This document shows positions 4,750 to 23,590 of a stretch of 64,000 nt of DNA, piece by piece. Numbering within the stretch: the stretch's first letter is position 1; each line of letters starts with the position of its first letter. The stretch comes from Anthoceros angustus. Lineage: Eukaryota > Plantae > Anthocerotophyta. The DNA lies in NCBI GenBank assembly GCA_010909165.1, contig MU008202.1, forward strand, positions 310,001 to 374,000, in the 5' to 3' direction. Both the position numbers and the translations under genes were made by a program. The notes beneath the pieces were generated by a model. The model was not told the DNA's origin and made no database searches. It saw only the letters and a program-made list of their open reading frames with translations.

Positions 4750-7568
4750 TCAAATCAGGTATGGACTATCCAACACGCCGTAGCCAGCCACGACTCCTCC
4801 CTCGGAAGAGGAGGACACTTTGGTTCGCACCAGGTGACCTGTTTGCCGGTTCAGAAGGACTCTCTCTCCTTGTCTGCGCGTCACAACAGCCCACTGTTAA
4901 TGCTCCAGTAATCAGGCAGCATGGTGCCCCGAGGGTCATGGACAACGCTTACCGGAGGTATGCACCGTATATCCCCACTTCCGACACCGTCTCGTACATG
5001 TTCCATGTACCTTGTCGTACCAAGTACGTCATGTGCACAGGGGGAGAAATTCTTTGCTGAAGGATGTATGCTGCCAATCCGCTGCCGCCAGCCGCTTTGA
5101 GCTCCAGTAGCTTCGTCCTCACATCCTCGCCGTATAGGTTGTTTCCTGCCAGACATCAGGTTAAAATGTGGGAAAACTTGCAAGGCTCAAAGTCGAGTCG
5201 TAATTCAAAAAACAGCAAGGGAGCGCACCTCCTCCCTCTCGCTGAGGCTTCAGAACAAGTTTGTCTGGATCAGAGATTGCTTGCTCAATAATTGCCTCGG
5301 AGCCTTCTTCTTCCAGACCCCAGAGGCCAGCGAAACATCTCCGTAGTTTCCTCGCATCAGAACTTGGCAAAAATCTGAACGGGACCGTAACCATGAAATG
5401 ATATCAGTTCATACGTCAGAAGGTGATGCACGTCCCCATGGCAGCGCGCAGAACTATACCTCTTACCTTTCAACAACACCAGGCTTTGCTAACTCCTGCT
5501 GGACCTTCTTGGTTCCAGCTAGATGATAAGCGATGGAGGGGCACTTGATGGCTCTTGATCTTTCCAGCAGCAACCTAGCAACCCATTCCTGCACTCAAGA
5601 CATACTGTACGTCTCAACCCAAATGCTGCGATGCGGCTGACAATGTCACCTTTCCTGATCAAAACTGAGAGGACGACACTTGGGCAAAAAGAAGACATCT
5701 AGCGAGCAGGAATGAACGCCCAGATAGTCACCGATTCAGACGGGTAGTCAGTGGGAGTGTATCCAGCTCTAAAATAAACCACAGACACAGCTTGCTCCTC
5801 ACTGCAAGCACGCCCACAGTGGTGTTAGGGTTTCACAGGTGTATGGAGACTTGCGTACTGGAAACGGACCTGAAGAATCATACATGAGCAGAGTGCCATC
5901 ATCGTCGATCGTCCCATGCTCATATATCTCCGCTAGGGTCCTCCGGATGGATCGCACTCCATATGTTCTTATCTGTCAAGGTGTAACCTCTATGGGGCTG
6001 GTCATCTTGAATATGCGCACCCTCACCCAAACTTCAGGGCCCATCTCGAGAGTAACAGAAACAACTTAAGGACATTCAAAGCTCAAAGAAAAGAGGATAT
6101 GAGTCATATAGCCGGAAAGCCAGCCAATGTTGATCATACATGTTCTTTTCGTCCGGCTGCACAACGAAAAGCACCGCTGCACTGACAGTGGAACTTCGGT
6201 GTCAGTAAACTGTAAAACGTCCAGGCTGGCCCTTAATGCAAGCATCCATCAAGAAAATATCCTTATGAGTGAAAGGCAAGCACCTCTTGTGGCCATATGC
6301 ATCCCAAGCTAACGCCAATGCTTCTGCATATCCACGATCGGCCTTGTTATCAGGAACCTTACTGCATTCCAAGATGCTGCGGTCTCCAAGCTGGCCAACC
6401 AGGTATCTGAGATCAAGTATCACAAGTGAGAAGACAGGGATTTGGAGGTGCTCATCCAAATAGATCAGTCAGGGAGGTTGGTCACTACTTGTGCAGAGAA
6501 CTGATGAGAGGAGCAAGACCAGCAAACGAGGAAGATATGGTATTGATCTCCACTTGCAGAAGTAGTCCAGTTGGCATGTCAAGCATATAATCTGAACGGT
6601 TCAACCCCAAAACAGCCTCCTGGAACCACGTACGTGCCGTAGAAGAATCAGGGAGGGCATCCGACTCGTCCCATAAGCATCCCAAGCAGAGAGCATGAAC
6701 CACAAAACACATACCGGCTTCAACCCCTCACTTATTACATTGGCATGGATGTCGAGTAGTCTGTCCGTGAAGGGATCAGCCAATCGTGTTCTGCAACATT
6801 GAATCCTCCAACACATTGTCAACAAGGTGGCTGTTTAAACTTCGAATGCCATGAATGCTCACGGCTGGAAGAAGGGCAACAAACCTGGCATGTACTTGTT
6901 CCAAGAACTCTCCGTCGGCGGCCACCCTATCCACAAGGGTGTTGAAAAGAGGTGCCAGCTCCACAGCCTCGAGGAAAGCATCTTTCGTTATAGGAGCAGG
7001 CAGTAGCGACAATGGTGCATGTCCAAGGCCAACACCTGGAATCTTGCCAGAATTCTGCCTTCCAAGAACAGTCCCAAAAATGCAGCATTAGACACCCAAC
7101 AATTCGACGTCCCACAAATTCCACACATAAACTCATACACAACCATTCCAATACCTCCACATTCTTGTCTCCCACCAGAAGCCCGTGCAGTGAAGCCCAC
7201 ACCAAGGCATCTTCCACAAGACTAGCAGCAACCTCCGGAGGAACCAATCCTGACGACTCCAGATTCACATCCGCGGCGACAGGCGGGCCACCATGCCCTT
7301 CAGAGCCGGAGGCAGGCGTGCGGGGAGCTGCGTCAGCTGCGGCCTCCATTGCCTTCCCTAGAGCTCCGCTTCTCAAATGCAAGTTCCGCCCAAAACGCCG
7401 GGGAACAAAGTCCTGAACCAAATGCACTCCGTTCCAGGCATCTACCTCCACATCTCCGGCTTGGAGCGGCACAAGACCTCGCCTCAGTCTGCAAGATCGG
7501 CTGCTGAGAGCCGGAAGAGCATAGGACAGAGCAGGGCTGGCGATTCCGGGTGCTGCGTCCAGTCTCAT
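4750..7568 (-). CDS. GSH2: Glutathione synthetase, multi-exon, with N-terminal transit-peptide-like extension
   Basis: Exon translations include [78 protein letters not shown] and [25 protein letters not shown]-stop, separated by GT-AG introns. ATG at 7568, second ATG near 7349. Confidence 0.93.
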
Positions 7569-8518
7569 GACTCGACTCGACTGGACTTCCACCTCTGAAC
7601 TCCTGGACTCCACCCAACCCAGCTCGACTCGTGCTTGCCGGCCAGTCACATGCGATAATCACGGCATTTGAGCACAGAGATCAGCTCGCACTTGCCTTTG
7701 CTGGACCACTCAGTGGCTCCACGGAAGGCTTGCCACATGTAGGAATCTGCAGTGCATCGGACAAAGTGTTCCGGACCGGAGTCGAAGTTGCTCAAGGGAC
7801 ACATCTAACAGGTCAGTTGGGTGTTTCCGGTTTACATACTATTACAAACAACTGATGAAAGACGCTTCCCCTTACGATGGAGCAGCTTTGTTTATGCTGG
7901 TTTGTTGAAAGATCGAGCTGTGCGTATGCGGCAAAGCCATAAAGCTCATGGGCTTTCAGCCTTGCATGCCTCCTTGCCCTTGGCGATAACTTGGGGGCTG
8001 TAGCCACCTCAAAGTCTTCAGTACTCTTGGAACTTAGTTCCCCATCTCCTGACATTCGTGGTCTGTTTCCAGCTTGCATCTCAGGGAAAAATCACACTCT
8101 TGACGACCCTGACGATAGAACCTGCATCGACAACAATTAACTCTTACGTTGCGAGGGGCTGATGGCCGACCCGGTGTTAGGCAGTCTCTGTCGAAGATCC
8201 TTGAGGGGGGCGGCGTAGGGCGCCGGTACAGGCAAAGAGAACATCCATGCTTGTTGGGAATTCCATGGTCTTGTTTTAATAGTGCTCAGTACCATGGAGG
8301 AAGAGGTCTTTCCGTTGCTACCAGAAGTGGGGATTTCCTGGATGGATCAACGACTGGATACATCCTGTCTCCCATGGTCTCTTCATCTTGGTGGCGTGCC
8401 TGGGCTTGCTGGGAGGTCCTGCTTGACGAGGCCACTGGAAACGCTGGCTCCAGGGTAGGAATGGATTTTCCGTCGGCGGCGGTCTTATGGTGCCGACTTG
8501 GATAAATTTGGCGGTCCG

Positions 8519-9040
8519 ATGAGGTTTATGTGGGTCCTTTTGCAGAGATGTGTCAAGCGGGCAGCCCTGGCAATGGGCAAGCAGCGTGCATGTGATGTTG
8601 ACTCTGGCTGCTATGCCAACATGTCCGTGAGCTTTCGGTCCATGTCTGATGCAGTTCAGGGGAAAGGTAGATTACGTCAAGGAAACGTTCAGTCATGGTC
8701 CACGTTGATATCAAGGTACGTCAAGGACGGGAAGCTGCGGGAGAGCATCACAAGTTAGAAGCAGATGGTGGACCAGGGTGAGAAGCCAGACAAATACACT
8801 TTTCTGAGCTTACTCAAAGCCTGTGGCAGCTTGGCAGACCTGAGACTTGCAAGATGGATGCACAAAGAAGTTGCGAAGTACAAATGGGATTCAGATTTGT
8901 TTGTGGGGAATTCCGTGGTTGCGATGTATGCAAAATGTGGGAGTATGGCTGATGCTCACCATGTGTTTGATACGTTGTGTCACCGCAATGTGGTGTCGTG
9001 GAATGCTCTGATTGCAGGTTACGCTAATCAGGAAGAAGGG
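8519..9040 (+). pseudogene. 5' fragment of the PLS-class PPR gene (probable original position), truncated at a template-switch junction
   Basis: Nearly identical to 12449-12970 except TAC>TAG at 8756-8758. The sequence jumps to GSH2 at GGAAGAAGGG (9031-9040). Confidence 0.85.
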
Positions 9041-9966
9041 CAACAAACCTGGCATGTACTTGTTCCAAGAACTCTCCGTCGGCGGCCACCCTATCCACAA
9101 GGGTGTTGAAAAGAGGTGCCAGCTCCACAGCCTCGAGGAAAGCATCTTTCGTTATAGGAGCAGGCAGTAGCGACAATGGTGCATGTCCAAGGCCAACACC
9201 TGGAATCTTGCCAGAATTCTGCCTTCCAAGAACAGTCCCAAAATGCAGCATTAGACACCCAACAATTCGACGTCCCACAAATTCCACACATAAACTCATA
9301 CACAACCATTCCAATACCTCCACATTCTTGTCTCCCACCAGAAGCCCGTGCAGTGAAGCCCACACCAAGGCATCTTCCACAAGACTAGCAGCAACCTCCG
9401 GAGGAACCAATCCTGACGACTCCAGATTCACATCCGCGGCGACAGGCGGGCCACCATGCCCTTCAGAGCCGGAGGCAGGCGTGCGGGGAGCTGCGTCAGC
9501 TGCGGCCTCCATTGCCTTCCCTAGAGCTCCGCTTCTCAAATGCAAGTTCCGCCCAAAACGCCGGGGAACAAAGTCCTGAACCAAATGCACTCCGTTCCAG
9601 GCATCTACCGGTCGATAATTATGGGCAATACTCGTCTACATGTATGCCAACTGTGGAAATCTGGTGGAAGCGGTGACTGTTTTGAGACCTTGTCTCATCG
9701 TGATGCAGTGTCATGGACAATATTGATGGCGATGTATGCTCAGCAAGGTCAAGGCGAGAAGGCTCTGCAGTATGCCCGAATGCAAGATGAAGGTGTGAGA
9801 CCACAATCTCGTACTTTTGTTAGTGCGTTGAAAGCTTGTAGTAACCTTGCGGCTTCTGAAGAGGCTATGAAGGTGAATGGAAAACTTGTAAAAGCGCAGT
9901 GCCTAAAAAGGGAAGAGCATAGGACAGAGCAGGGCTGGCGATTCCGGGTGCTGCGTCCAGTCTCAT
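9031..9966 (-). pseudogene. Partial duplicate of GSH2 exons 1-2 and intron 1, interrupted by a PPR-derived segment (9610-9910)
   Basis: 9031-9609 copies 6867-7446 and 9911 onward copies 7513 onward. The intron is retained, so the copy was made at the DNA level. Confidence 0.9.
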
Positions 9967-10915
9967 GACTCGACTCGACTGGACTTCCACCTCTGAACTC
10001 CTGGACTCCACCCAACCCAGCTCGACTCGTGCTTGCCGGCCAGTCACATGCGATAATCACGGCATTTGAGCACAGAGATCAGCTCGCACTTGCCTTTGCT
10101 GGACCACTCAGTGGCTCCACGGAAGGCTTGCCACATGTAGGAATCTGCAGTGCATCGGACAAAGTGTTCCGGACCGGAGTCGAAGTTGCTCAAGGGACAC
10201 ATCTAACAGGTCAGTTGGGTGTTTCCGGTTTACATACTATTACAAACAACTGATGAAAGACGCTTCCCCTTACGATGGAGCAGCTTTGTTTATGCTGGTT
10301 TGTTGAAAGATCGAGCTGTGCGTATGCGGCAAAGCCATAAAGCTCATGGGCTTTCAGCCTTGCATGCCTCCTTGCCCTTGGCGATAACTTGGGGGCTGTA
10401 GCCACCTCAAAGTCTTCAGTACTCTTGGAACTTAGTTCCCCATCTCCTGACATTCGTGGTCTGTTTCCAGCTTGCATCTCAGGGAAAAATCACACTCTTG
10501 ACGACCCTGACGATAGAACCTGCATCGACAACAATTAACTCTTACGTTGCGAGGGGCTGATGGCCGACCCGGTGTTAGGCAGTCTCTGTCGAAGATCCTT
10601 GAGGGGGGCGGCGTAGGGCGCCGGTACAGGCAAAGAGAACATCCATGCTTGTTGGGAATTCCATGGTCTTGTTTTAATAGTGCTCAGTACCATGGAGGAA
10701 GAGGTCTTTCCGTTGCTACCAGAAGTGGGGATTTCCTGGATGGATCAACGACTGGATACATCCTGTCTCCATGGTCTCTTCATCTTGGTGGCGTGCCTGG
10801 GCTTGCTGGGAGGTCCTGCTTGACGAGGCCACTGGAAACGCTGGCTCCAGGGTAGGAATGGATTTTCCGTCGGCGGCGGTCTTATGGTGCCGACTTGGAT
10901 AAATTTGGCGGTCCG

Positions 10916-12233
10916 ATGAGGTTTATGTGGGTCCTTTTGCAGAGATGTGTCAAGCGGGCAGCCCTGGCAATGGGCAAGCAGCGTGCATGTGATGTTGACT
11001 CTGGCTGCTATGCCAACTGTGGAAATCTGGTGGAAGCGGTGACTGTTTTGAGACCTTGTCTCATCGTGATGCAGTGTCATGGACAATATTGATGGCGATG
11101 TATGCTCAGCAAGGTCAAGGCGAGAAGGCTCTGCAGTTGTATGCCCGAATGCAAGATGAAGGTGTGAGACCACAATCTCGTACTTTTGTTAGTGCGTTGA
11201 AAGCTTGTAGTAACCTTGCGGCTTCTGAAGAGGCTATGAAGGTGAATGGAAAACTTGTAAAAGCGCAGTGCCTAAAAAGGGAAGAGCATCCATGCCGATT
11301 TCCTTCGGACTGGCTCTGAAATAGATATCTATGTTGGCACCACTCTAGTCGACATGTATGCAATGTGTGGGAGCATGGTGGATGCACAAAGGTTTTTGAT
11401 TCCATGCCTCGACATGACGTGTTGTCATGGACTGCACTGATTCGTGGATATGCTCAGCAACAGCAGGGAGGAGTCATTGCTGTGCAACTATTTGCCGACA
11501 TGGTCAAAGAAGGTGTGAAACCCAATGCCCGGACATTTCTTTGTGTGCTCAAAGCCTTGGGAAGCATGGCATCCATGGGCACGGCTTCTCAGCTAACAGG
11601 ACAGTCCCGAAAATTAGAGTGTCTGCAGGAAGGCAGGCAAATCCATGCCAAACTAGTGGAGGCGGGGCTTGGAGTCGATGTTTTTCTGTGCAACACTCTT
11701 ATTGACATGTATGCTAACTGTGGCAGCATGGAGGAGGCTAAACACGTCTTTGATGCCATGCCAAACATGATGTTGTGTCATGGAATGCAATGATGACAGG
11801 ATACGCACAATGTGAAGAAGGTGCAAAGTCGATGCAGATATATTTTCAGATGAAGAAGGAAGGCTTGAAACCAAACGAGGCGACCTTTCTGTGCGCTCTG
11901 AAGGCCTGCAGCTTGACGGGAACCCTGGAAAGCTGCTCACAGATCCATCAAGACATCACAGAATCGGACTCCATTGGAGCAGTGATTTGGCCACCACCCT
12001 TGTCCACGCCTATGGGAAGTGCGGGGACATGGCACGTGCTCGCACAGTGTTCAACACCGCTGCGGATCAGAATGTTGCTCTATGGAACGCCCTGATAACA
12101 GGATACGCCGCGCAAGGAGAGTGCCAACAGTGCTTCCAATCCCTGCATGACATGCAGGCGGGACTGCATCCAAACGGAGCCACGTTCGCTCCCATCCTTG
12201 CTGCATGCAGCCACGCAGGCCTGGTGGAGGAAG
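10916..12233 (+). pseudogene. Chimeric PPR fragment (leader + internal repeats + late repeats)
   Basis: The leader is fused at YAN (11009-11017) to an S motif, then at VSW (11778-11784) to late repeats. Several 1-2 nt indels interrupt the frame. Confidence 0.8.
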
Positions 12234-12448
12234 AGGTCTTTCCGTTGCTACCAGAAGTGGGGATTTCCTGGATGGATCAACGACTGGATACATCCTGTCT
12301 CCCATGGTCTCTTCATCTTGGTGGCGTGCCTGGGCTTGCTGGGAGGTCCTGCTTGACGAGGCCACTGGAAACGCTGGCTCCAGGGTAGGAATGGATTTTC
12401 CGTCGGCGGCGGTCTTATGGTGCCGACTTGGATAAATTTGGCGGTCCG

Positions 12449-13838
12449 ATGAGGTTTATGTGGGTCCTTTTGCAGAGATGTGTCAAGCGGGCAGCCCTGG
12501 CAATGGGCAAGCAGCGTGCATGTGATGTTGACTCTGGCTGCTATGCCAACATGTCCGTGAGCTTTCGGTCCATGTCTGATGCAGTTCAGGGGAAAGGTAG
12601 ATTACGTCAAGGAAACGTTCAGTCATGGTCCACGTTGATATCAAGGTACGTCAAGGACGGGAAGCTGCGGGAGAGCATCACAAGTTACAAGCAGATGGTG
12701 GACCAGGGTGAGAAGCCAGACAAATACACTTTTCTGAGCTTACTCAAAGCCTGTGGCAGCTTGGCAGACCTGAGACTTGCAAGATGGATGCACAAAGAAG
12801 TTGCGAAGTACAAATGGGATTCAGATTTGTTTGTGGGGAATTCCGTGGTTGCGATGTATGCAAAATGTGGGAGTATGGCTGATGCTCACCATGTGTTTGA
12901 TACGTTGTGTCACCGCAATGTGGTGTCGTGGAATGCTCTGATTGCAGGTTACGCTAATCAGGAAGAAGGGAAGAAGGCGCTGGAGCTCTACTCCCATATG
13001 CAACAGGAAGGGGTGAGAGCAAGCATTCGGACGTTTGTCTCAGTGCTGCAAGCTTGTGGCAGCTTAGCAGCTACACAGCATGGCATTGGGGGGGATGTGA
13101 ATGTGGTGAAAGGAGAGTGCTTAAAACTGGGGACAGAAATTCATAATGAAGTTGTAAGGAGGCATCTACCGGTCGATAATTATGTGGGCAATACTCTCGT
13201 CTACATGTATGCCAACTGTGGAAATCTGGTGGAAGCGGTGACTGTTTTTGAGACCTTGTCTCATCGTGATGCAGTGTCATGGACAATATTGATGGCGATG
13301 TATGCTCAGCAAGGTCAAGGCGAGAAGGCTCTGCAGTTGTATGCCCGAATGCAAGATGAAGGTGTGAGACCACAATCTCGTACTTTTGTTAGTGCGTTGA
13401 AAGCTTGTAGTAACCTTGCGGCTTCTGAAGAGGCTATGAAGGTGAATGGAAAACTTGTAAAAGCGCAGTGCCTAAAAAAGGGGAAGAGCATCCATGCCGA
13501 TTTCCTTCGGACTGGCTCTGAAATAGATATCTATGTTGGCACCACTCTAGTCGACATGTATGCAATGTGTGGGAGCATGGTGGATGCACAAAAGGTTTTT
13601 GATTCCATGCCTCGACATGACGTGTTGTCATGGACTGCACTGATTCGTGGATATGCTCAGCAACAGCAGGGAGGAGTCATTGCTGTGCAACTATTTGCCG
13701 ACATGGTCAAAGAAGGTGTGAAACCCAATGCCCGGACATTTCTTTGTGTGCTCAAAGCCTTGGGAAGCATGGCATCCATGGGCACGGCTTCTCAGCTAAC
13801 AGGACAGTCCTGAAAATTAGAGTGTCTGCAGGAAGGCA
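12449..13838 (+). pseudogene. N-terminal part of the PLS-class PPR protein
   Basis: The 461-aa ORF carries P-L-S triplets (VVSWNALIAGY, TFVSVLQACG, MYAKCGS). TGA at 13811 corresponds to CGA in two other copies. The true start is uncertain and an upstream exon is possible. Confidence 0.85.
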
Positions 13839-15144
13839 CTAATATTGGGATATGCGCAGCAAATGGATGGCTCTAGGGGCTTGGAACTGTATGCAGAGAT
13901 GCAGGCAGAGGGTGTGAGACCAGACGGCTGGACGTTTGTGAGTGTGCTCAAAGCATGTGGTAGCCTTTCAGACATGGAGACAGCCACGGGCAGAAAGTTG
14001 TTGAAATCAAAGTCTTTGCAGAAAGTTTGAAACTCGAGTGCCTGCGAAAGGGAAGAGCATCCATGCCGATTTCCTTCGGACTGGCTCTGAAATAGATATC
14101 TATGTTGGCACCACTCTAGTCGACATGTATGCAATGTGTGGGAGCATGGTGGATGCACAAAGGTTTTTGATTCCATGCCTCGACATGACGTGTTGTCATG
14201 GACTGCACTGATTCGTGGATATGCTCAGCAACAGCAGGGAGGAGTCATTGCTGTGCAACTATTTGCCGACATGGTCAAAGAAGGTGTGAAACCCAATGCC
14301 CGGACATTTCTTTGTGTGCTCAAAGCCTTGGGAAGCATGGCATCCATGGCACGGCTTCTCAGCTAACAGGACAGTCCCGAAAATTAGAGTGTCTGCAGGA
14401 AGGCAGGCAAATCCATGCCAAACTAGTGGAGGCGGGGCTTGGAGTCGATGTTTTTCTGTGCAACACTCTTATTGACATGTATGCTAACTGTGGCAGCATG
14501 GAGGAGGCTAAACACGTCTTTGATGCCATGCCCAAACATGATGTTGTGTCATGGACAACAATGATTGGAGGCTATGCCCAGCAGGGACAAGGCGAGACGG
14601 CCCTGCGGTTCTTTGCCAAAATGGGGAGGAAGGCCGCAACCACTTCCAGTCCATGACGCAGGATCACGGCATTACTCCAACCATCGAGCACTACGGCAGC
14701 ATGGTCGACCTCTTTGCCCGCGCCGGGCTCTTCGATGACGCCGAAGCCCTGCTCTCCACCATGCCCTTACAGCCCGACCTCCCGATGTGGTCATCCCTCC
14801 TCGCCGCTTGTCGCATGTTCGGCAACATCCCTCTCGCCCGACGCGCATTCCAACGTGCGGTTAGCCTTGCTCCCTCCTCCAGCTCCCCGTATATCCTAAT
14901 GTCCCAGATTTACGCCCAGGCCGACATGCGGGAAGAAGCCGACAAGGTGGAACGCCTCAGGCAGCGCGCCGGCGCCTGGAAGGAGCCCGGGACGAGCTGG
15001 TTGGAGAACGCCGGTTCTATGCATGTGTTTGTCGTCGACGATCGCCGGCATCCCGATTCCGGCGACCTGCGCGCCGTGCTATGCAGACTTACAAAGGAAA
15101 CGTCACGCATAGCTCTGAAAGCCGCCGCACGAAACGTTTCGTGA
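13839..15144 (+). pseudogene. Shuffled PPR fragments ending in intact E1-E2-E+ domains
   Basis: Internal repeats are joined to L2-S2-E1-E2 and a PG box (EPGTSWLENAGSMHVFVVDDRRHP), with a stop at 15142-15144. Confidence 0.8.
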
Positions 15145-15659
15145 AGTTCTGACGATTGAAAACGTGGATGAGTGATAAAGCGCCTGTAGTATTTCCGCTC
15201 GAAAGGATTGTTCCGGTTTTTTTTCGGGTTTCACGACTGGCTGCGGTTTGTATAATATCTCCCTGCCGTGCACACTGTACGTCCCTGGCACGACAACTAG
15301 AAATCGGAAGGATGGAAGCCTGAAAAGGATAATGCGGCGATGGTAGGCTGCGAGCCGCCTTGCTGGCGTGGTGCATTTTTGCCACCCAAAGAAGGCTCAT
15401 CCACTTCAGGCGGCGGGTGAATCGTGACGTGGTGCGTAAATATCTCATCCTGTGGGATGTTATTTGTTTATATTGTGCCAGATTCCGAGCCCGCCCTGCA
15501 AGGTCGGCCACATTTTCAATGATTGACTGGTCTCGGATGTTCTATGTAGCAAAGGTGGAGGAGGAGGACGAGGAGATGGATGGGCCCCATGGCCGATAGT
15601 AACGAGCTCACGATCGGGCTTACCAGAGGCTGCCCACAACCTGCGCCTTCTCCTGTAGC

Positions 15660-16329
15660 ACGCTCTGCCATATCGAGATGTGGTTTCATGGACAACAATG
15701 ATTGGAGGCTATGCCCAGCAGGGACAAGGCGAGACGGCCCTGCGGTTCTTTGCCAAAATGGGGGAGGAAGGTGTACAACCAAATAGTCGTACTTTTGTCA
15801 GCCTGCTCAAAGCATGTGGGAGCCTGGCAGACTTTGAGCAAGCCGCCCTTGTAGATGGCCTGTTTGTGAAGCTGGGCTCCCTGCGAATGTTGAAGGCGAT
15901 TCATGAGCAAGTCATAACAAGCGGCTTTGAATCTGACATCTTTGTTGGTACTAGTCTTGTTGGCATGTATGTGAACTGTGGATCCATGGTGGATGCAGTT
16001 CGCATGTTCGGCAACATCCCTCTCGCCCGACGCGCATTCCAACGTGCGGTTAGCCTTGCTCCCTCCTCCAGCTCCCCGTATATCCTAATGTCCCAGATTT
16101 ACGCCCAGGCCGACATGCGGGAAGAAGCCGACAAGGTGGAACGCCTCAGGCAGCGCGCCGGCGCCTGGAAGGAGCCAGGACGAGCTGGTTGGAGAACGCC
16201 GGTTCTATGCATGTGTTTGTCGTCGACGATCGCCGGCATCCCGATTCCGGCGACCTGCGCGTGCTATGCAGACTTACAAAGGAAACGTCACGCATAGCTC
16301 TGAAAGCCGCCGCACGAAACGTTTCGTGA
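15660..16329 (+). pseudogene. PPR fragment (one P-L-S triplet, partly unique in the window) fused in frame to E1-E2-E+
   Basis: ORF 15680..16297 reads ...GSMVDAV-RMFGNIPLARR. Positions 15772-15999 occur only here. Confidence 0.8.
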
Positions 16330-16845
16330 AGTTCTGACGATTGAAAACGTGGATGAGTGATAAAGCGCCTGTAGTATTTCCGCTCGAAAGGATTGTTCCG
16401 GTTTTTTCGGGTTTCACGACTGGCTGCGGTTTGTATAATATCTCCTGCCGTGCACACTGTACGTCCCTGGCACGACAACTAGAAATCGGAAGGATGGAAG
16501 CCTGAAAAGGATAATGCGGCGATGGTAGGCTGCGAGCCGCCTTGCTGGCGGCGTGGTGCATTTTGCCACCCAAAGAAGGCTCATCCACTTCAGGCGGCGG
16601 GTGAATCGTGACGTGCGTAAATATCTCATCCTGTGGGATGTTATTTGTTTATATTGTGCCAGATTCCGAGCCCGCCCTGCAAGGTCGGCCACATTTTCAA
16701 TGATTGACTGGTCTCGGATGTTCTATGTAGCAAAGGTGGAGGAGGAGGACGAGGAGATGGATGGGCCCCATGGCCGATAGTAACGAGCTCACGATCGGGC
16801 TTACCAGAGGCTGCCCACAACCTGGCCTGCGCCTTCTCCTGTAGC

Positions 16846-18889
16846 ACGCTCTGCCATATCGAGATGTGGTTTCATGGACAGCAATGATTTCTGGGTATGG
16901 GCAGCAGGGACAAGCTGAGACGGCCTTGAAACTCTTTTCTCGCATGAAGGAGTCAGGAGTGACACCAGACAGATGGACTTTCATGACCGTGCTAAAAGTG
17001 TGTGGAAGTGAGGCAACGAAGGAGCAAGCTATGGCTGTGGATGGGCAATCAGTCAAAGTGGTGTGCCTGAGCAAGGGCAAGATGATTCACGCTGAAGTCC
17101 TGAAGAGAAGTCACGGATTGGATACGTTGGTTGGCAGCGCTCTTGTTACGATGTATGTCAATTGTGGGAGCATGTCAGATGCTCGGCTTGTGTTTGAATC
17201 TTTGCCTGAACATAATGTGGTTTCATGGAATGCGATGTTAGCTGGATATGCTCAACAAGAGCAGGGTCTTAATACTCTGACCCTATTCAACCAGATGCTA
17301 GAGGCCGATGTCAGGCCTGATAAGTGGAGCTTCGTCAGTACTTTAAGCGCATGTAGCAGCCTGGCTGCCACGGAACAAGCTACTATTGTCAAGGGGAAAA
17401 GTTTGAAACTCGAGTGCCTGCGAAAGGGAAGGTGGGTTCACTCTGAAGCTGTCAACAGGGGCTTCGAGAGGGATATGTTTGTGGGCACAGCTCTGATTGA
17501 CATGTACGCAAAATGTGGGAGCATGAGAGATGCGCAGCATGTGTTTGACGGATTGCCGCACCGTGATGTGGTCTCCTGGAATGCACTAATATTGGGATAT
17601 GCGCAGCAAATGGATGGCTCTAGGGGCTTGGAACTGTATGCAGAGATGCAGGCAGAGGGTGTGAGACCAGACGGCTGGACGTTTGTGAGTGTGCTCAAAG
17701 CATGTGGTAGCCTTTCAGACATGGAGACAGCCACGGGCAGAAAGTTGTTGAAATCAAAGTCTTTGCAGAAAGTGAAGGAGATACATGCTGAGGCCGTCAG
17801 AAGAGGACTTGGAAGTGACATCCATGTGGCCAACACTCTGATCGACACATACGCTTGTTGCGGAGAAATGGCAGATGCGGAGCATGTCTTCGGGTCACTG
17901 GCCCGACGTGACGTGGTCTCATGGAATGCAATGATGACAGGATACGCACAATGTGAAGAAGGTGCAAAGTCGATGCAGATATATTTTCAGATGAAGAAGG
18001 AAGGCTTGAAACCAAACGAGGCGACCTTTCTGTGCGCTCTGAAGGCCTGCAGCTTGACGGGAACCCTGGAAAGCTGCTCACAGATCCATCAAGACATCAC
18101 AGAATCGGGACTCCATTGGAGCAGTGATTTGGCCACCACCCTTGTCCACGCCTATGGGAAGTGCGGGGACATGGCACGTGCTCGCACAGTGTTCAACACC
18201 GCTGCGGATCAGAATGTTGCTCTATGGAACGCCCTGATAACAGGATACGCCGCGCAAGGAGAGTGCCAACAGTGCTTCCAATCCCTGCATGACATGAGGC
18301 AGGCGGGACTGCATCCAAACGGAGCCACGTTCGCTCCCATCCTTGCTGCATGCAGCCACGCAGGCCTGGTGGAGGAAGGCCGCAACCACTTCCAGTCCAT
18401 GACGCAGGATCACGGCATTACTCCAACCATCGAGCACTACGGCAGCATGGTCGACCTCTTTGCCCGCGCCGGGCTCTTCGATGACGCCGAAGCCCTGCTC
18501 TCCACCATGCCCTTACAGCCCGACCTCCCGATGTGGTCATCCCTCCTCGCCGCTTGTCGCATGTTCGGCAACATCCCTCTCGCCCGACGCGCATTCCAAC
18601 GTGCGGTTAGCCTTGCTCCCTCCTCCAGCTCCCCGTATATCCTAATGTCCCAGATTTACGCCCAGGCCGACATGCGGGAAGAAGCCGACAAGGTGGAACG
18701 CCTCAGGCAGCGCGCCGGCGCCTGGAAGGAGCCAGGACGAGCTGGTTGGAGAACGCCGGTTCTATGCATGTGTTTGTCGTCGACGATCGCCGGCATCCCG
18801 ATTCCGGCGACCTGCGCGCGCCGCTATGCAGACTTACAAAGGAAACGTCACGCATAGCTCTGAAAGCCGCCGCACGAAACGTTTCGTGA
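16846..18889 (+). CDS. C-terminal half of a PLS-E+ PPR RNA-editing factor, lacking its N-terminus in cis
   Basis: The 663-aa ORF has 4 PLS triplets, P2-L2-S2 (ACSHAGLVEEG, EHYGSMVDLFARAG), E1 and E2. The PG box carries a 1-nt frameshift relative to the 14990 copy. No DYW domain follows. Confidence 0.8.
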
Positions 18890-19956
18890 AGTTCTGACGA
18901 TTGAAAACGTGGATGAGTGATAAAGCGCCTGTAGTATTTCCGCTCGAAAGGATTGTTCCGGTTTTTTTTCGGGTTTCACGACTGGCTGCGGTTTGTATAA
19001 TATCTCCCTGCCGTGCACACTGTACGTCCCTGGCACGACAACTAGAAATCGGAAGGATGGAAGCCTGAAAAGGATAATGCGGCGATGGTAGGCTGCGAGC
19101 CGCCTTGCTGGCGGCGTGGTGCATTTTTTGCCACCCAAAGAAGGCTCATCCACTTCAGGCGGCGGGTGAATCGTGACGTGGTGCGTAAATATCTCATCCT
19201 GTGGGATGTTATTTGTTTTATATTGTGCCAGATTCCGAGCCCGCCCTGCAAGGTCGGCCACATTTTCAATGATTGACTGGTCTCGGATGTTCTATGTAGC
19301 AAAGGTGGAGGAGGAGGACGAGGAGATGGATGGGCCCCATGGCCGATAGTAACGAGCTCACGATCGGGCTTACCAGAGGCTGCCCACAACCTGGCCTGCG
19401 CCTTCTCCTGTAGCACGCTCTGCCCTGCTGCCGTTAAACTCGCACCTCCGGGGCTGGGGAGTCGCCTGCAGCTGCCGCCGTCCAGTCCAGCAGCTGCCGC
19501 CATCCCACCCAGCAGCAGCTGCCGCAGCCGAGCCATGGCGCTCAGGCAATGCTGCAGTGGGTGCAGCACTTCGCTCTTTAGTAAGCGCAGCTTGGCAGGA
19601 GGCACGGGCGGCCGGGGCAGGTAATGCTATACAATGTGGTGGGTTGTGGTGCGTATGCGTGCTTGTTGTTTCTGTTTCGGTGTTGGGTGTTGTTGTAGCG
19701 GTGGATTTAGGAATGGGTGGTGCGGGAGGTGTGCATTTGGGTCGGGAGCTGATCCTGGTGGGACGGTGGGTGTTTAGATTTGGGAGCTTATCGGATGGCC
19801 GGACCCAGTCCTGGGTGAACGTCGAGTGAGCGAGTGTTGTGGGAGTGTGAGTGGGTGTACATTTCATGAAAACCAAAAAAAAGGAGTCCTTGGATGGATG
19901 CGGAATTTCCTTCCAGTAGGTGAAGCATTGGGAGATTGTGGTGAGGAAGGGAGGTG

Positions 19957-22900
19957 ATGGCAAGCGGGGCGTCGTTTTTGGGGGAGGCTTCGTTTCCGAC
20001 TGCTTCTGTTACAGGGGGGGCCACTGTTCATGGACCCTTGCCTACTCGGTCGGGGAGTAGCAGGGGGCGGCGGGGGGGAAGGATTCACTCCGGGCCTCGT
20101 GCTGCGCACGAAACGCAGGAGCAGGCGTGGGGCACAGCTGTGCAGAGGGTTGCGCTCCCGGGGTCTGGAAGGGGAGGTGCATGCGTGGGAGGAGGGGTGT
20201 ATGTGAGGCCGGGGCCGGGGGCTGGAGTGGCCACCGCTCTGCACCAGAACGAGCATTTGCAAGGAGGGCTCAGTGCTGAGTTTTGTGGGCGGAGGTCGAC
20301 CAGGCTTGTGTCCAAGTTTCACCATGGCCGCCAAAAGCTGTATCTGGGGAAGCATTCGACCGAAGCTGATGCGGCTTTGCAGGAGGTTTTCAGCCTGCCG
20401 TCTTCAGCTGGGACAGGGCCCTTGCTTAACAGGTGGTCTCACAAGCTTGTTGGGCTGGAGGACTTTCCTTACATGTTGCGGGAGCTTGGGAATAAAGGGG
20501 AGTGGGAGAAGGCGCTCAAGAGTTTCGACTGGATGGTGTCGCAGCAGAGTATCAGGGGTGAGTGGAGTAAGTTGGCTAGCATTATGATCTCCACTCTTGG
20601 GAGGTTGGGGAAGGTGGATCTGGCTCAGAAGGTGTTTGATAAGGCTGTGGCAGCGGGATTCGGGAAGAATGTGTATGCCTTTTCTGCGCTTGTGAGTGCG
20701 TACGGTCGGAGTGGGAGGTGTAGGGAAGCTTTGGATGTGTTTCAGGCCATGAAGAAGGCTGGGTGTCCTCCAAATTTGATCACCTATAACTCAATTATTG
20801 ATGCCTGTGGGAAGGGTGGTGTGGATCTGAACAAGGCCCTTGAGATCTTTGATGAGATGCAGAGGGAGGGTGTTGAACCTGATCGCATCACCTTCAATTC
20901 TTTGATTGCTGTTTGCAGCCGAGGCAGTCTCTGGGAGGAGTCGCAAAGAGTCTTCGCCGAGATGCAACGACGAGGGATTGAACAAGACATTTTCACTTAC
21001 AATACGTTGGTAGATGCTGTTTGCAAGGGTGGCCAGATGGACATCGCAGCCTCCATAGTAGCAACCATGCGGCAGAAGGGTATTATGCCGAATGTCGTTA
21101 CCTACAGTACTATGATAGATGGGTATGGGAAAATTGGGTGTTTTGACGAGGCTATAAGGGTGTATCATGAGATGAAAGATGCTGGGATACGCCCTGATCG
21201 TGTTTCATACAATACTCTGCTTGACATCTACGCCAAGTTGGGCATGTTTGAGGAAGCTCTCACTATTTGCAAAGAGATGGAGAGAGCAGGCTGGAAAACT
21301 GACGTTGTAACTTATAATGCCCTCATTGATGCGTACGGGAAGCAGGGCAAGTATAGGGAGGCAGCCAGTCTCTTTAGCAGAATGAAGGACGAAGGCCTCG
21401 TCCCGAATGTGCTGACATATTCAGCTTTGATTTATGCATTCTCTAAAGGAGGCCTTCACCAAGAGGCCAGGCAGGTGTTCGAAGAATTCAGAGATGCAGG
21501 GTTGAAGCCAGATGTTGTACTCTATAGTGCCTTGATAGACGCTTTCTGTAAAAGCGGGTTAGTGGAGGAAGCAGTGCAGTTGCTTGAGGAGATGATGGCC
21601 GAGGGTATACAGCCCAATATTGTGACGTACAATTCCTTGATCGATGCGTATGGGCGAAGGGGCCAGGTAAGTGATTGCTTTGAGCATATTGGCTGACGTG
21701 GAATTAGGATGTGGTACAAGTGAGCCTCCTGCTCGTCATTTTAGCACTTCCCTGAAGTTCCAGTTAGCAGTCACTAGCTTTGTCAGAGATTCACGAAATA
21801 CCAGACAAGCATTCCTGTGACCAATGAGTCCATGCCTTTGGGACGTGCAGGTTGATTATGCATTGAGCACAATGGAGAGGATGAAAGGTGTTGGCATTGT
21901 TCCAGATTGTCGGACGTACAATTCAGTCATTTACGCATTTGGCAATGAATGTCGTGGTGAGCAACCTCTTCAAACACCCGAGCAGGTGCGGGCTAGGAGT
22001 ATAGAATTTGATATCCCACCGGTTCCAAGACCATTGGATGCACAAGGTGGCCAAGGGGATATCCTGGCAGCTGTTCGAGTTTTCCATGAGATGCAAGAGC
22101 TGGGCGTGAAGCCAAATGTAGTGACTTTTTCAGCTATTCTCAATGCGTGCAGGTGAGTTCACACTATCCTTTTGTTATGTGTTGGGTGCAACACGTTAGC
22201 TGCAAAGTCATCTGACCTGTGACAAATCGCTTCTCCACTCCCTGTCTCTGCAGCCGGTGTGCATCATTTGAGGAGGCATCCCTCTTGCTTGAAGAAATGC
22301 GCCTCTTTGACAGCCGTGTCTATGGAGTAGCCCATGGCTTGTTGATGGGAATGCGGGAGCAGGTTTGGCAAGAGGCTGAGGCCTTGTTTGATCAGATGTT
22401 CTTCATGGATCTCGCTACTGCCGGGGCGTTCTACAACGCCCTAACAGATGTGCTGTGGCATTTTGGTCAGGTATGTGGCTCGGTCTTTGCAACTTTGTAT
22501 ATTTCGTTACTGCAACTGACCTTTCTTCTAGAGATCCTTATGTTCCCCTGTGTCATGCAGAGAGAGGGAGCCCAAAAAGTAGTGGTAGCAGCTAAACGAC
22601 GTCAAGTGTGGGCCAATGCATGGTGGAGGTCCGAGCAGCAATTTTGTCTAGATTTGCATCTGATGTCTGTGGGAGCAGCTCAAGCCATGCTCCATGTTTG
22701 GCTCCTGCACATCCGAGGTCTGTTGTATGAGGGGCATGAGCTACCGAGACTGTTGAGGTACGTGTTGACACCTCTTAATTGTTCGGCTTGTCGAAGTTGA
22801 TTTCCAACCGACATGGTGGTAGATTGACGTTCATGACATCTGGCATGGCAGCATTCTGACAGGGTGGGGTAAGCACAGCAAAGTAGCGGGTGACAGCTCG

Positions 22901-23119: not shown

Positions 23120-23357
23120 ACGACGAGGCGACGACGAGTCAGCACGCCTTTCTCTAATCTTCCCCCTCGAAGCTGTGTATATATATATAATATCTCACCT
23201 TTAAATTTTGTATGTGACACCTGGGAAGCTGTGTGCCACAAATTCTACTTATTTTCTGCTCCGGGTACCTCTACTCTTCATGTGTACATGTGGATGGGTA
23301 AATTTTGCAGTCTCTACCAGGTGTACATTCGGTGAGAACTAATCTTCTTGACTGAGG

Positions 23358-23590
23358 AAGAAAGATGTCAAGGATTTGGTTGGTTTGGTTCCCATGGGAA
23401 GCCTTCTCTGCTGTACCCTTTCATAGATAAGAGAGCTGAAGAAAGATACCAAGGATATGGTTGGTTTGGTTCCATGGGAGGCCTTCTCTACTACACTCTT
23501 TCATAGATAGGAGAGCTGATGAAAGATATCAAGGATATGGTTGGTTTGGTTCCCATGGGAGACCTCCCCTACTAGACCCTTAGAGCTGAA
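23358..23590. repeat. Tandem repeat, ~80 bp unit, ~3 copies
   Basis: The unit gaaagat..caaggat.tggttggtttggttcc(c)atggga...tttcatagata.gagagctga recurs near 23360, 23441 and 23521. Confidence 0.85.

Follow-up and report, generated by a model that had tools for sequence, protein, structure and literature searches.

Among the documented forms of template switching, human MM-BIR joins its segments at microhomologies with a median length of 3 bp, in both direct and inverted orientation (PMC13065848). Arabidopsis TMEJ makes use of 2.4–3 bp of microhomology, and sequence is lost at the ends (PMC10923293). The chimeras which arise during MDA have overlaps with a mode of 3 nt, and inverted joints outnumber direct ones by 9:1 (10.1101/2022.08.13.503872).

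In the 64-kb window, i.e., the whole stretch of Anthoceros angustus DNA that was analysed, self-BLAST delineates a patchwork on the forward strand (6867–19424) in which about 6.1 kb of distinct sequence is written out as 12.5 kb. The distinct sequence consists of the upstream region on the GSH2 side, one PPR gene and its 3′ flank. The 14 jumps between segments are all in direct orientation, stay within the 6.1 kb and occur about once per 0.9 kb; there is no inversion. Elsewhere in the window, self-BLAST found no comparable patchwork of near-identical copies, only one palindrome of 46 nt and a small number of short tandem repeats. The left-hand segment of the patchwork, duplicated at 6867–7446 and 9031–9609 (minus strand), carries what is seemingly the first coding exon of the minus-strand neighbour, which an earlier reader named as GSH2; the leftmost copy of this exon is still contiguous with the remainder of that gene.

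The gene at the centre of the patchwork is an intronless PPR gene of the PLS class, E subclass. This subclass is the type of the organellar RNA-editing factors of plants, and the product is probably such a factor. The Pfam families PPR, PPR_1, PPR_2 and PPR_3 match the ORFs 12428–13810 and 16866–18854 with E values down to 1e-69, and the DNA of the gene repeats with a period of 351 nt. The E motif (PF20431) is complete (3–63 of 63) in the copy 14551–15141; it is cut at 3–58 of 63 in the native end of the gene and in the insert described below, by the same frameshift. No DYW domain was found in the gene with Pfam. For translation and statistics only, a de-duplicated model was joined from 12428–13838, 14406–14633, 15772–16010 and 16846 onward, and its pieces were searched separately. 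This model forms one regular PLS-repeat reading frame, about 1311 codons long and interrupted by one stop and two frameshifts. Each of its adjacencies is seen directly somewhere in the window, with the exception of 16010|16846, which is the position that the sequence-only reading had singled out as crossed by no segment.

The left flank of this position is a single-copy PPR segment (15772–16010, forward strand), recognised from the copy-number profile, the translation and a Pfam PPR match on the ORF 15680–16294; its end (...GSMVDAVRMF) is the opening half of an S motif. The PPR reading frame breaks off at 16010, where it ends ...GATGCAGTTCGCATGTTCG, and picks up again at 16846. The letters of the window at this joint run ...GGATGCAGTTCGCATGTTCG up to 16010 and then GCAACATCCC... 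The bases supplied by the copy alone (16011–16845, 835 bases, forward strand) are near-identical to 18568–19414, the end of the gene and its 3′ flank in their native context on the same strand. Self-comparison of 16000–16855 with 18557–19424 gives 98.5% identity with one mismatch and 12 gap positions, in agreement with the earlier claim of a clean insertion of about 835 bp copied from there. The insert carries the E-motif end of the gene with its stop codon, followed by about 570 nt of the 3′ flank, and has 6–7 indel differences from the other tail copies. Its frame continues that of the S motif, to which it is fused, and Pfam detects the E_motif at residues 112–167 of the ORF 15680–16294.

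Both junctions of the insert have exact microhomology on the forward strand. At the left one, the 11-nt word TCGCATGTTCG (16000–16010) is common to 18557–18567; at the right one, the 10-nt word ACGCTCTGCC (16846–16855), which is native to the PPR S motif (D-A-L-P), is common to 19415–19424. The two partner words bracket the template. To the right of the insert follows the contiguous 3′ two-thirds of the gene (16856–18857, forward strand), with an ORF of 663 aa at 16866–18857 whose E-motif end is cut by a 1-nt frameshift missing from the copy 14551–15141. At the left joint, the S motif runs into the E motif without a change of frame (…VDAVRMF|GNIPLARRAF…) in 15680–16294 on the forward strand; if this joint were real, the locus would contain a short chimeric PPR-E ORF there.

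When 16010 is abutted to 16846, the sequence reads ...IFVGTSLVGMYVNCGSMVDAVRMFDALPYRDVVSW..., an S motif with the length and register of the neighbouring S motifs. The translated flanks, joined in a script only, give IFVGTSLVGMYVNCGSMVDAVRMFDALPYRD followed by VVSW in frame, which bears out the 31-aa S motif proposed on abutting the two ends with nothing added. The exit at 16010 and the entry at 16846 are adjacent bases of an intact motif, and the insertion removes no target base. The joined 30-mer GTTCGCATGTTCGACGCTCTGCCATATCGA has no match in the 64-kb window even when up to three mismatches are allowed, as the sequence-only reading had stated.

The exit at 16010 and the double entry at 15660 and 16846, also claimed before, could both be located: ACGCTCTGCCATATCGAGAT is present at each of the two entries. 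The first use of the 19424>16846 joint (15660–15694, forward strand) consists of the 10-nt microhomology (15660–15669), 16 bases unique to 16856–16871 and the 9-nt word TCATGGACA (15686–15694), at which the sequence switches back to 14558 onward. This bears out the roughly 25 nt said to be copied past this entry. The same joint is used a second time, so that it occurs in the patchwork at 15669 and at 16855. The earlier account lacked a further tail copy on the forward strand (14622–15669, equal to 18367–19424), which is entered from 14633 via the 9-nt word GGAGGAAGG. Purine-rich words containing GGAAG (GGAAGAGCAT, GGAGGAAGG, TGGAGGAAG, GGAAGAAGGG and AAAGGGAAG) are found at five joints (13482–13491, 18370–18379, 9031–9040), and one such site is both an exit and an entry.

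The 205-aa junction ORF has a single protein match, at 32% identity, and the best protein matches of the 663-aa ORF are at 43–50%. The 110-aa left-flank piece, compared with all representatives, reaches at best 59% over its length. Metagenome scans, with a 22-mer at the left flank and guided by the protein, gave no match. The collections searched hold no orthologue and no sequence of the same species; the species itself is missing from the protein collection, so that these blanks carry no weight. The gene directly downstream of the patchwork (19954–22800, forward strand) encodes a P-type PPR-SMR protein, the orthologue of GUN1 / At2g31400. Its best matches are in Riccia (77%), Marchantia (74%) and Sphagnum (81%, partial), which puts this genome with the bryophytes. 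Since the best matches of this GUN1-like protein, in liverworts and Sphagnum, reach merely 74–81%, neither the species nor any close relative is in the protein collection. Further downstream, past the GUN1-like gene, a unit of about 80 nt is repeated about three times in tandem (63–86% identity) at 23357–23581.

The exact microhomologies at the 14 joints measure 10, 11, 10, 9, 7, 9, 3, 5, 9, 9, 10, 9, 11 and 10 nt (one of the 9-nt values hinges on a homopolymer call), with a median and a mode of 9–10 nt. Three joints fall below 9 nt, with 3, 5 and 7 exact nt, or 8–10 nt if one mismatch is allowed. Availability was defined as the number of direct word pairs in the 6088-nt de-duplicated sequence. 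One junction uses a 7-nt pair (931 available) and none an 8-nt pair (260 available); five use 9 nt (76 available), three 10 nt (31 available) and two 11 nt (15 available), while none of the 17 available pairs of at least 12 nt is used. A step at 9 nt beats a log-linear dependence on length by 11.2 log-likelihood units, and the use of 8-nt pairs differs from that of 9-nt pairs with p = 5e-4 (Fisher's test). The 10 distinct junctions of 9–11 nt are all direct, from an offer of 122 direct and 83 inverted pairs (p = 0.006). The imperfect homology to the left and to the right of the joints gives no clear signal as to the direction of synthesis.

The three tail copies differ from one another at nine sites. 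The differences lie in T, C and A/G runs, in the loss of one unit of GGC-GGC, GTG-GTG or CCTGG-CCTG, and in one GC-rich stretch. The other repeated families of the patchwork have the same pattern of indels in homopolymers and short repeats. About 8 kb of duplicated sequence contain only two clean substitutions, 8758 G/C and 13811 T/C. Each of them turns a codon of one copy into a stop, TAC>TAG at 8758 (compared with 12688) and CGA>TGA at 13811 (compared with 11608 and 14378); the latter is a C>T change at a CpG, typical of methylation-linked basecalling error. CCCGGG in one copy (14997–15003) is CCAGG in the two others (18741–18746 and 16184–16189), which shifts the frame of the E motif. The presence of the same CCAGG error in two copies suggests a systematic consensus error, dependent on the methylation context, rather than a mutation. 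In our own tally, errors are about three times commoner in the extra copies than in the blocks in native context, with marginal significance. The differences between copies are consensus errors of a noisy long-read assembly, because a derived copy cannot repair its template: the copy 14551–15141 has an intact E motif, and the native end and the insert are both frameshifted.

The explanation in which we have moderate confidence, on the letters of the window, is that the insert and the whole patchwork were produced by sequence reconstruction in a noisy long-read assembly, and do not belong to the plant's germline chromosome. The sequence path would have been threaded through exact repeated words of about 9–11 nt, always in the same orientation and within a few kb. 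The words TCGCATGTTCG and ACGCTCTGCC would abut in the true gene, and their partners would bracket an 847-nt tail; a detour from TCGCATGTTCG through the tail to ACGCTCTGCC would then give one clean copy of the tail, with no base lost and no break. The locus offers seven configurations in which repeated words abut and their partners are in order, so that a clean insertion without a break is possible. In the plant, the locus probably comprises a single intact PLS/E-type PPR gene without introns, about 1311 codons long, in which 16846 comes directly after 16010; its transcript would read ...DAVRMFDALPYRD... We infer both that the path is absent from the DNA and what kind of software or consensus step would have written it; the anatomy, the identity of the copies, the noise pattern and the junction spectrum are observed directly.

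Several observations argue for reconstruction. The copies are alike save for indels in homopolymers and short tandem repeats and the two substitutions, and removal of the extra copies leaves one regular PLS-repeat ORF with the single stop and two frameshifts. The use of junctions steps up at 9 nt (0/260 for 8-mers, 5/76 for 9-mers) and is flat thereafter. Junctions of 9–11 nt are exclusively direct despite the 83 inverted pairs on offer, and the overlaps are far longer than in known polymerase-driven switching (about 3 nt). A threshold which is blind to longer matches and to base composition is what is expected of exact-word matching. On the other hand, we can name no assembler or polisher that threads kb-scale paths via words of 9–10 nt, and to our knowledge no standard genome assembler operates on words this short. 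Native long reads are obtained without any polymerase step, and assemblers of the ordinary overlap kind make no microhomology joins. The three junctions with 3, 5 and 7 exact nt are not predicted by a strict word rule, and a threshold of physical annealing with saturation near 9 nt would also be compatible with the local counts. If the patchwork is an artefact, the assembly would contain numerous spurious local duplications by which genes are disrupted, in this case that of a probable RNA-editing factor. Gene families would be inflated and repair scars mimicked, and the gene models, copy numbers and "pseudogenes" of the assembly would need to be checked at the level of the reads.

The sequence-only reading had favoured a molecular event over random mis-assembly. 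It was right in that the joints are not random mis-joins, considering the 10–11 nt of exact microhomology and the absence of any lost base, but a systematic, word-based error of reconstruction gives the same geometry. A doubtful but possible explanation is that the patchwork is real DNA formed in one recent event, in which a DNA end lay between 16010 and 16846. A growing 3′ end would have come off several times and annealed anew, at microhomologies, to a template close by on the same strand, by MMBIR or synthesis-dependent end joining. Synthesis from the left fragment would have run off at 16010, re-primed at 18557–18567 and copied the tail to 19424; this end would then have paired, via ACGCTCTGCC, with the extreme end of the right fragment. 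The same terminus would have been reached in an earlier round, which copied 16 nt and then fell off. Should the patchwork be physical DNA, the most parsimonious reading is a break between 16010 and 16846, since an end at this position would explain why synthesis ran off at 16010 and why the 19424>16846 landing was used twice.

That the sequence exits at 16010 and twice enters at 16846, the next base of the intact motif, with neither loss nor gain, is expected of preserved break ends and would be unlikely for random exits and entries, and the repeated use of the same landing points the same way. The junctions of 3–7 nt, three in number, suit a polymerase better than an exact-word rule. In plants, templated insertions from the opposing flank of a break are a recognised signature (PMC10923293), and in human MM-BIR one locus can supply many insertions (PMC13065848). 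Nevertheless, a median microhomology of 9–10 nt is to be set against about 3 nt in every documented process, the pairs of 12 nt or more stand unused (0/17), none of the 14 jumps is inverted and the copies, in a plant that is presumably haploid, show no divergence. Moreover, the gene would be destroyed.

A real patchwork would mean that a bryophyte PPR gene was broken between two adjacent bases and rebuilt by about 14 same-strand switches needing about 9–11 nt of pairing, as an instance of a genome-wide, direct-only copying with long microhomology, unlike the TMEJ and MMBIR of seed plants and animals. We hold this full account to be unlikely, and a shade more tentative than the event itself. 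If real, the locus would offer a natural example, resolved to the nucleotide, of serial template switching set off by a break in a plant outside the seed plants. Its need for long microhomology would be unusual, and it would illustrate how PPR repeat modules could be shuffled in frame.

Stepwise evolution of the locus appears very improbable. It would require a tandem duplication of 16846–19424, the subsequent loss of the first 16846–18556 between the 11-nt repeats, and about 11 more duplications or deletions in the locus. A junction made once and then copied would account for the fact that the 19424>16846 joint is the same at 15669 as at 16855, and direct orientation is natural to tandem duplications. 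Yet some 13 independent events would have had to occur in 6 kb with practically no substitutions between copies, and the deletion would have to begin exactly at the start of the duplicated unit. We give equally little credit to chimeric molecules made in vitro before sequencing, by MDA or PCR jumping, and carried into the assembly. In their favour, the patchwork is local and has several junctions, each with microhomology. However, MDA joints are inverted in a ratio of about 9:1, have a 3-nt mode and occur about once per 3–11 kb (10.1101/2022.08.13.503872), compared with 14/14 direct joints, 9–11 nt and about one per 0.9 kb here, and PCR jumping should strongly favour words of 13–16 nt, which stand unused. 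Even jointly, stepwise evolution and in vitro chimeras have little probability.

Other candidates were discarded: word matching after homopolymer compression (which, by our own reading of the junction sequences, leaves microhomologies of just about 5 symbols), transposon target-site duplications (no duplicated word is common to the two flanks), copying of an mRNA by reverse transcriptase (the segments take in 1.6 kb upstream of the start codon) and left-to-right generative copying (it is the block furthest to the right that is intact). The argument that an assembly constrained by coverage would explain why no original base is ever lost was dropped, since 29% of the simulated random walks at the observed switch rate cover everything too.

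As for the known systems, the insert resembles plant Pol-theta (TMEJ) filler insertions in that it is copied from the other side of the putative break, 1.7–2.6 kb to the right, with microhomology at both joints and an aborted first round followed by re-annealing. It differs from them in its length (835 nt, versus tens of nt), in the distance of 1.7–2.6 kb to its template, and in its 11 and 10 nt of microhomology with no base lost, when TMEJ relies on about 1–6 nt, usually with loss of the ends (PMC10923293). With MMBIR, FoSTeS and chromoanasynthesis the locus shares many switches in one stretch, a gain of copies (from 6.1 to 12.5 kb), microhomology at the joints and the repeated use of one template locus. 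In documented cases, the median is about 3 bp, orientations are mixed and the segments come from distant loci (PMC13065848), whereas the switches here are direct only, remain within 6.1 kb and use 9–11 nt.

The MDA (phi29) chimeras are likewise local rearrangements with several junctions and overlap at the joints, but about 90% of them are inverted, with a 3-nt mode (10.1101/2022.08.13.503872); here, 14/14 are direct with a mode of 9–10 nt. The comparison with false duplications from the mis-threading of a graph differs in that three junctions of the present locus lie under the bound. In other respects the patchwork seems to be like them: the identity at the junctions appears to have a sharp lower bound, with longer matches ignored, a single orientation is used, the rearrangements are local, and the copies are identical, with the noise concentrated in the extra ones.
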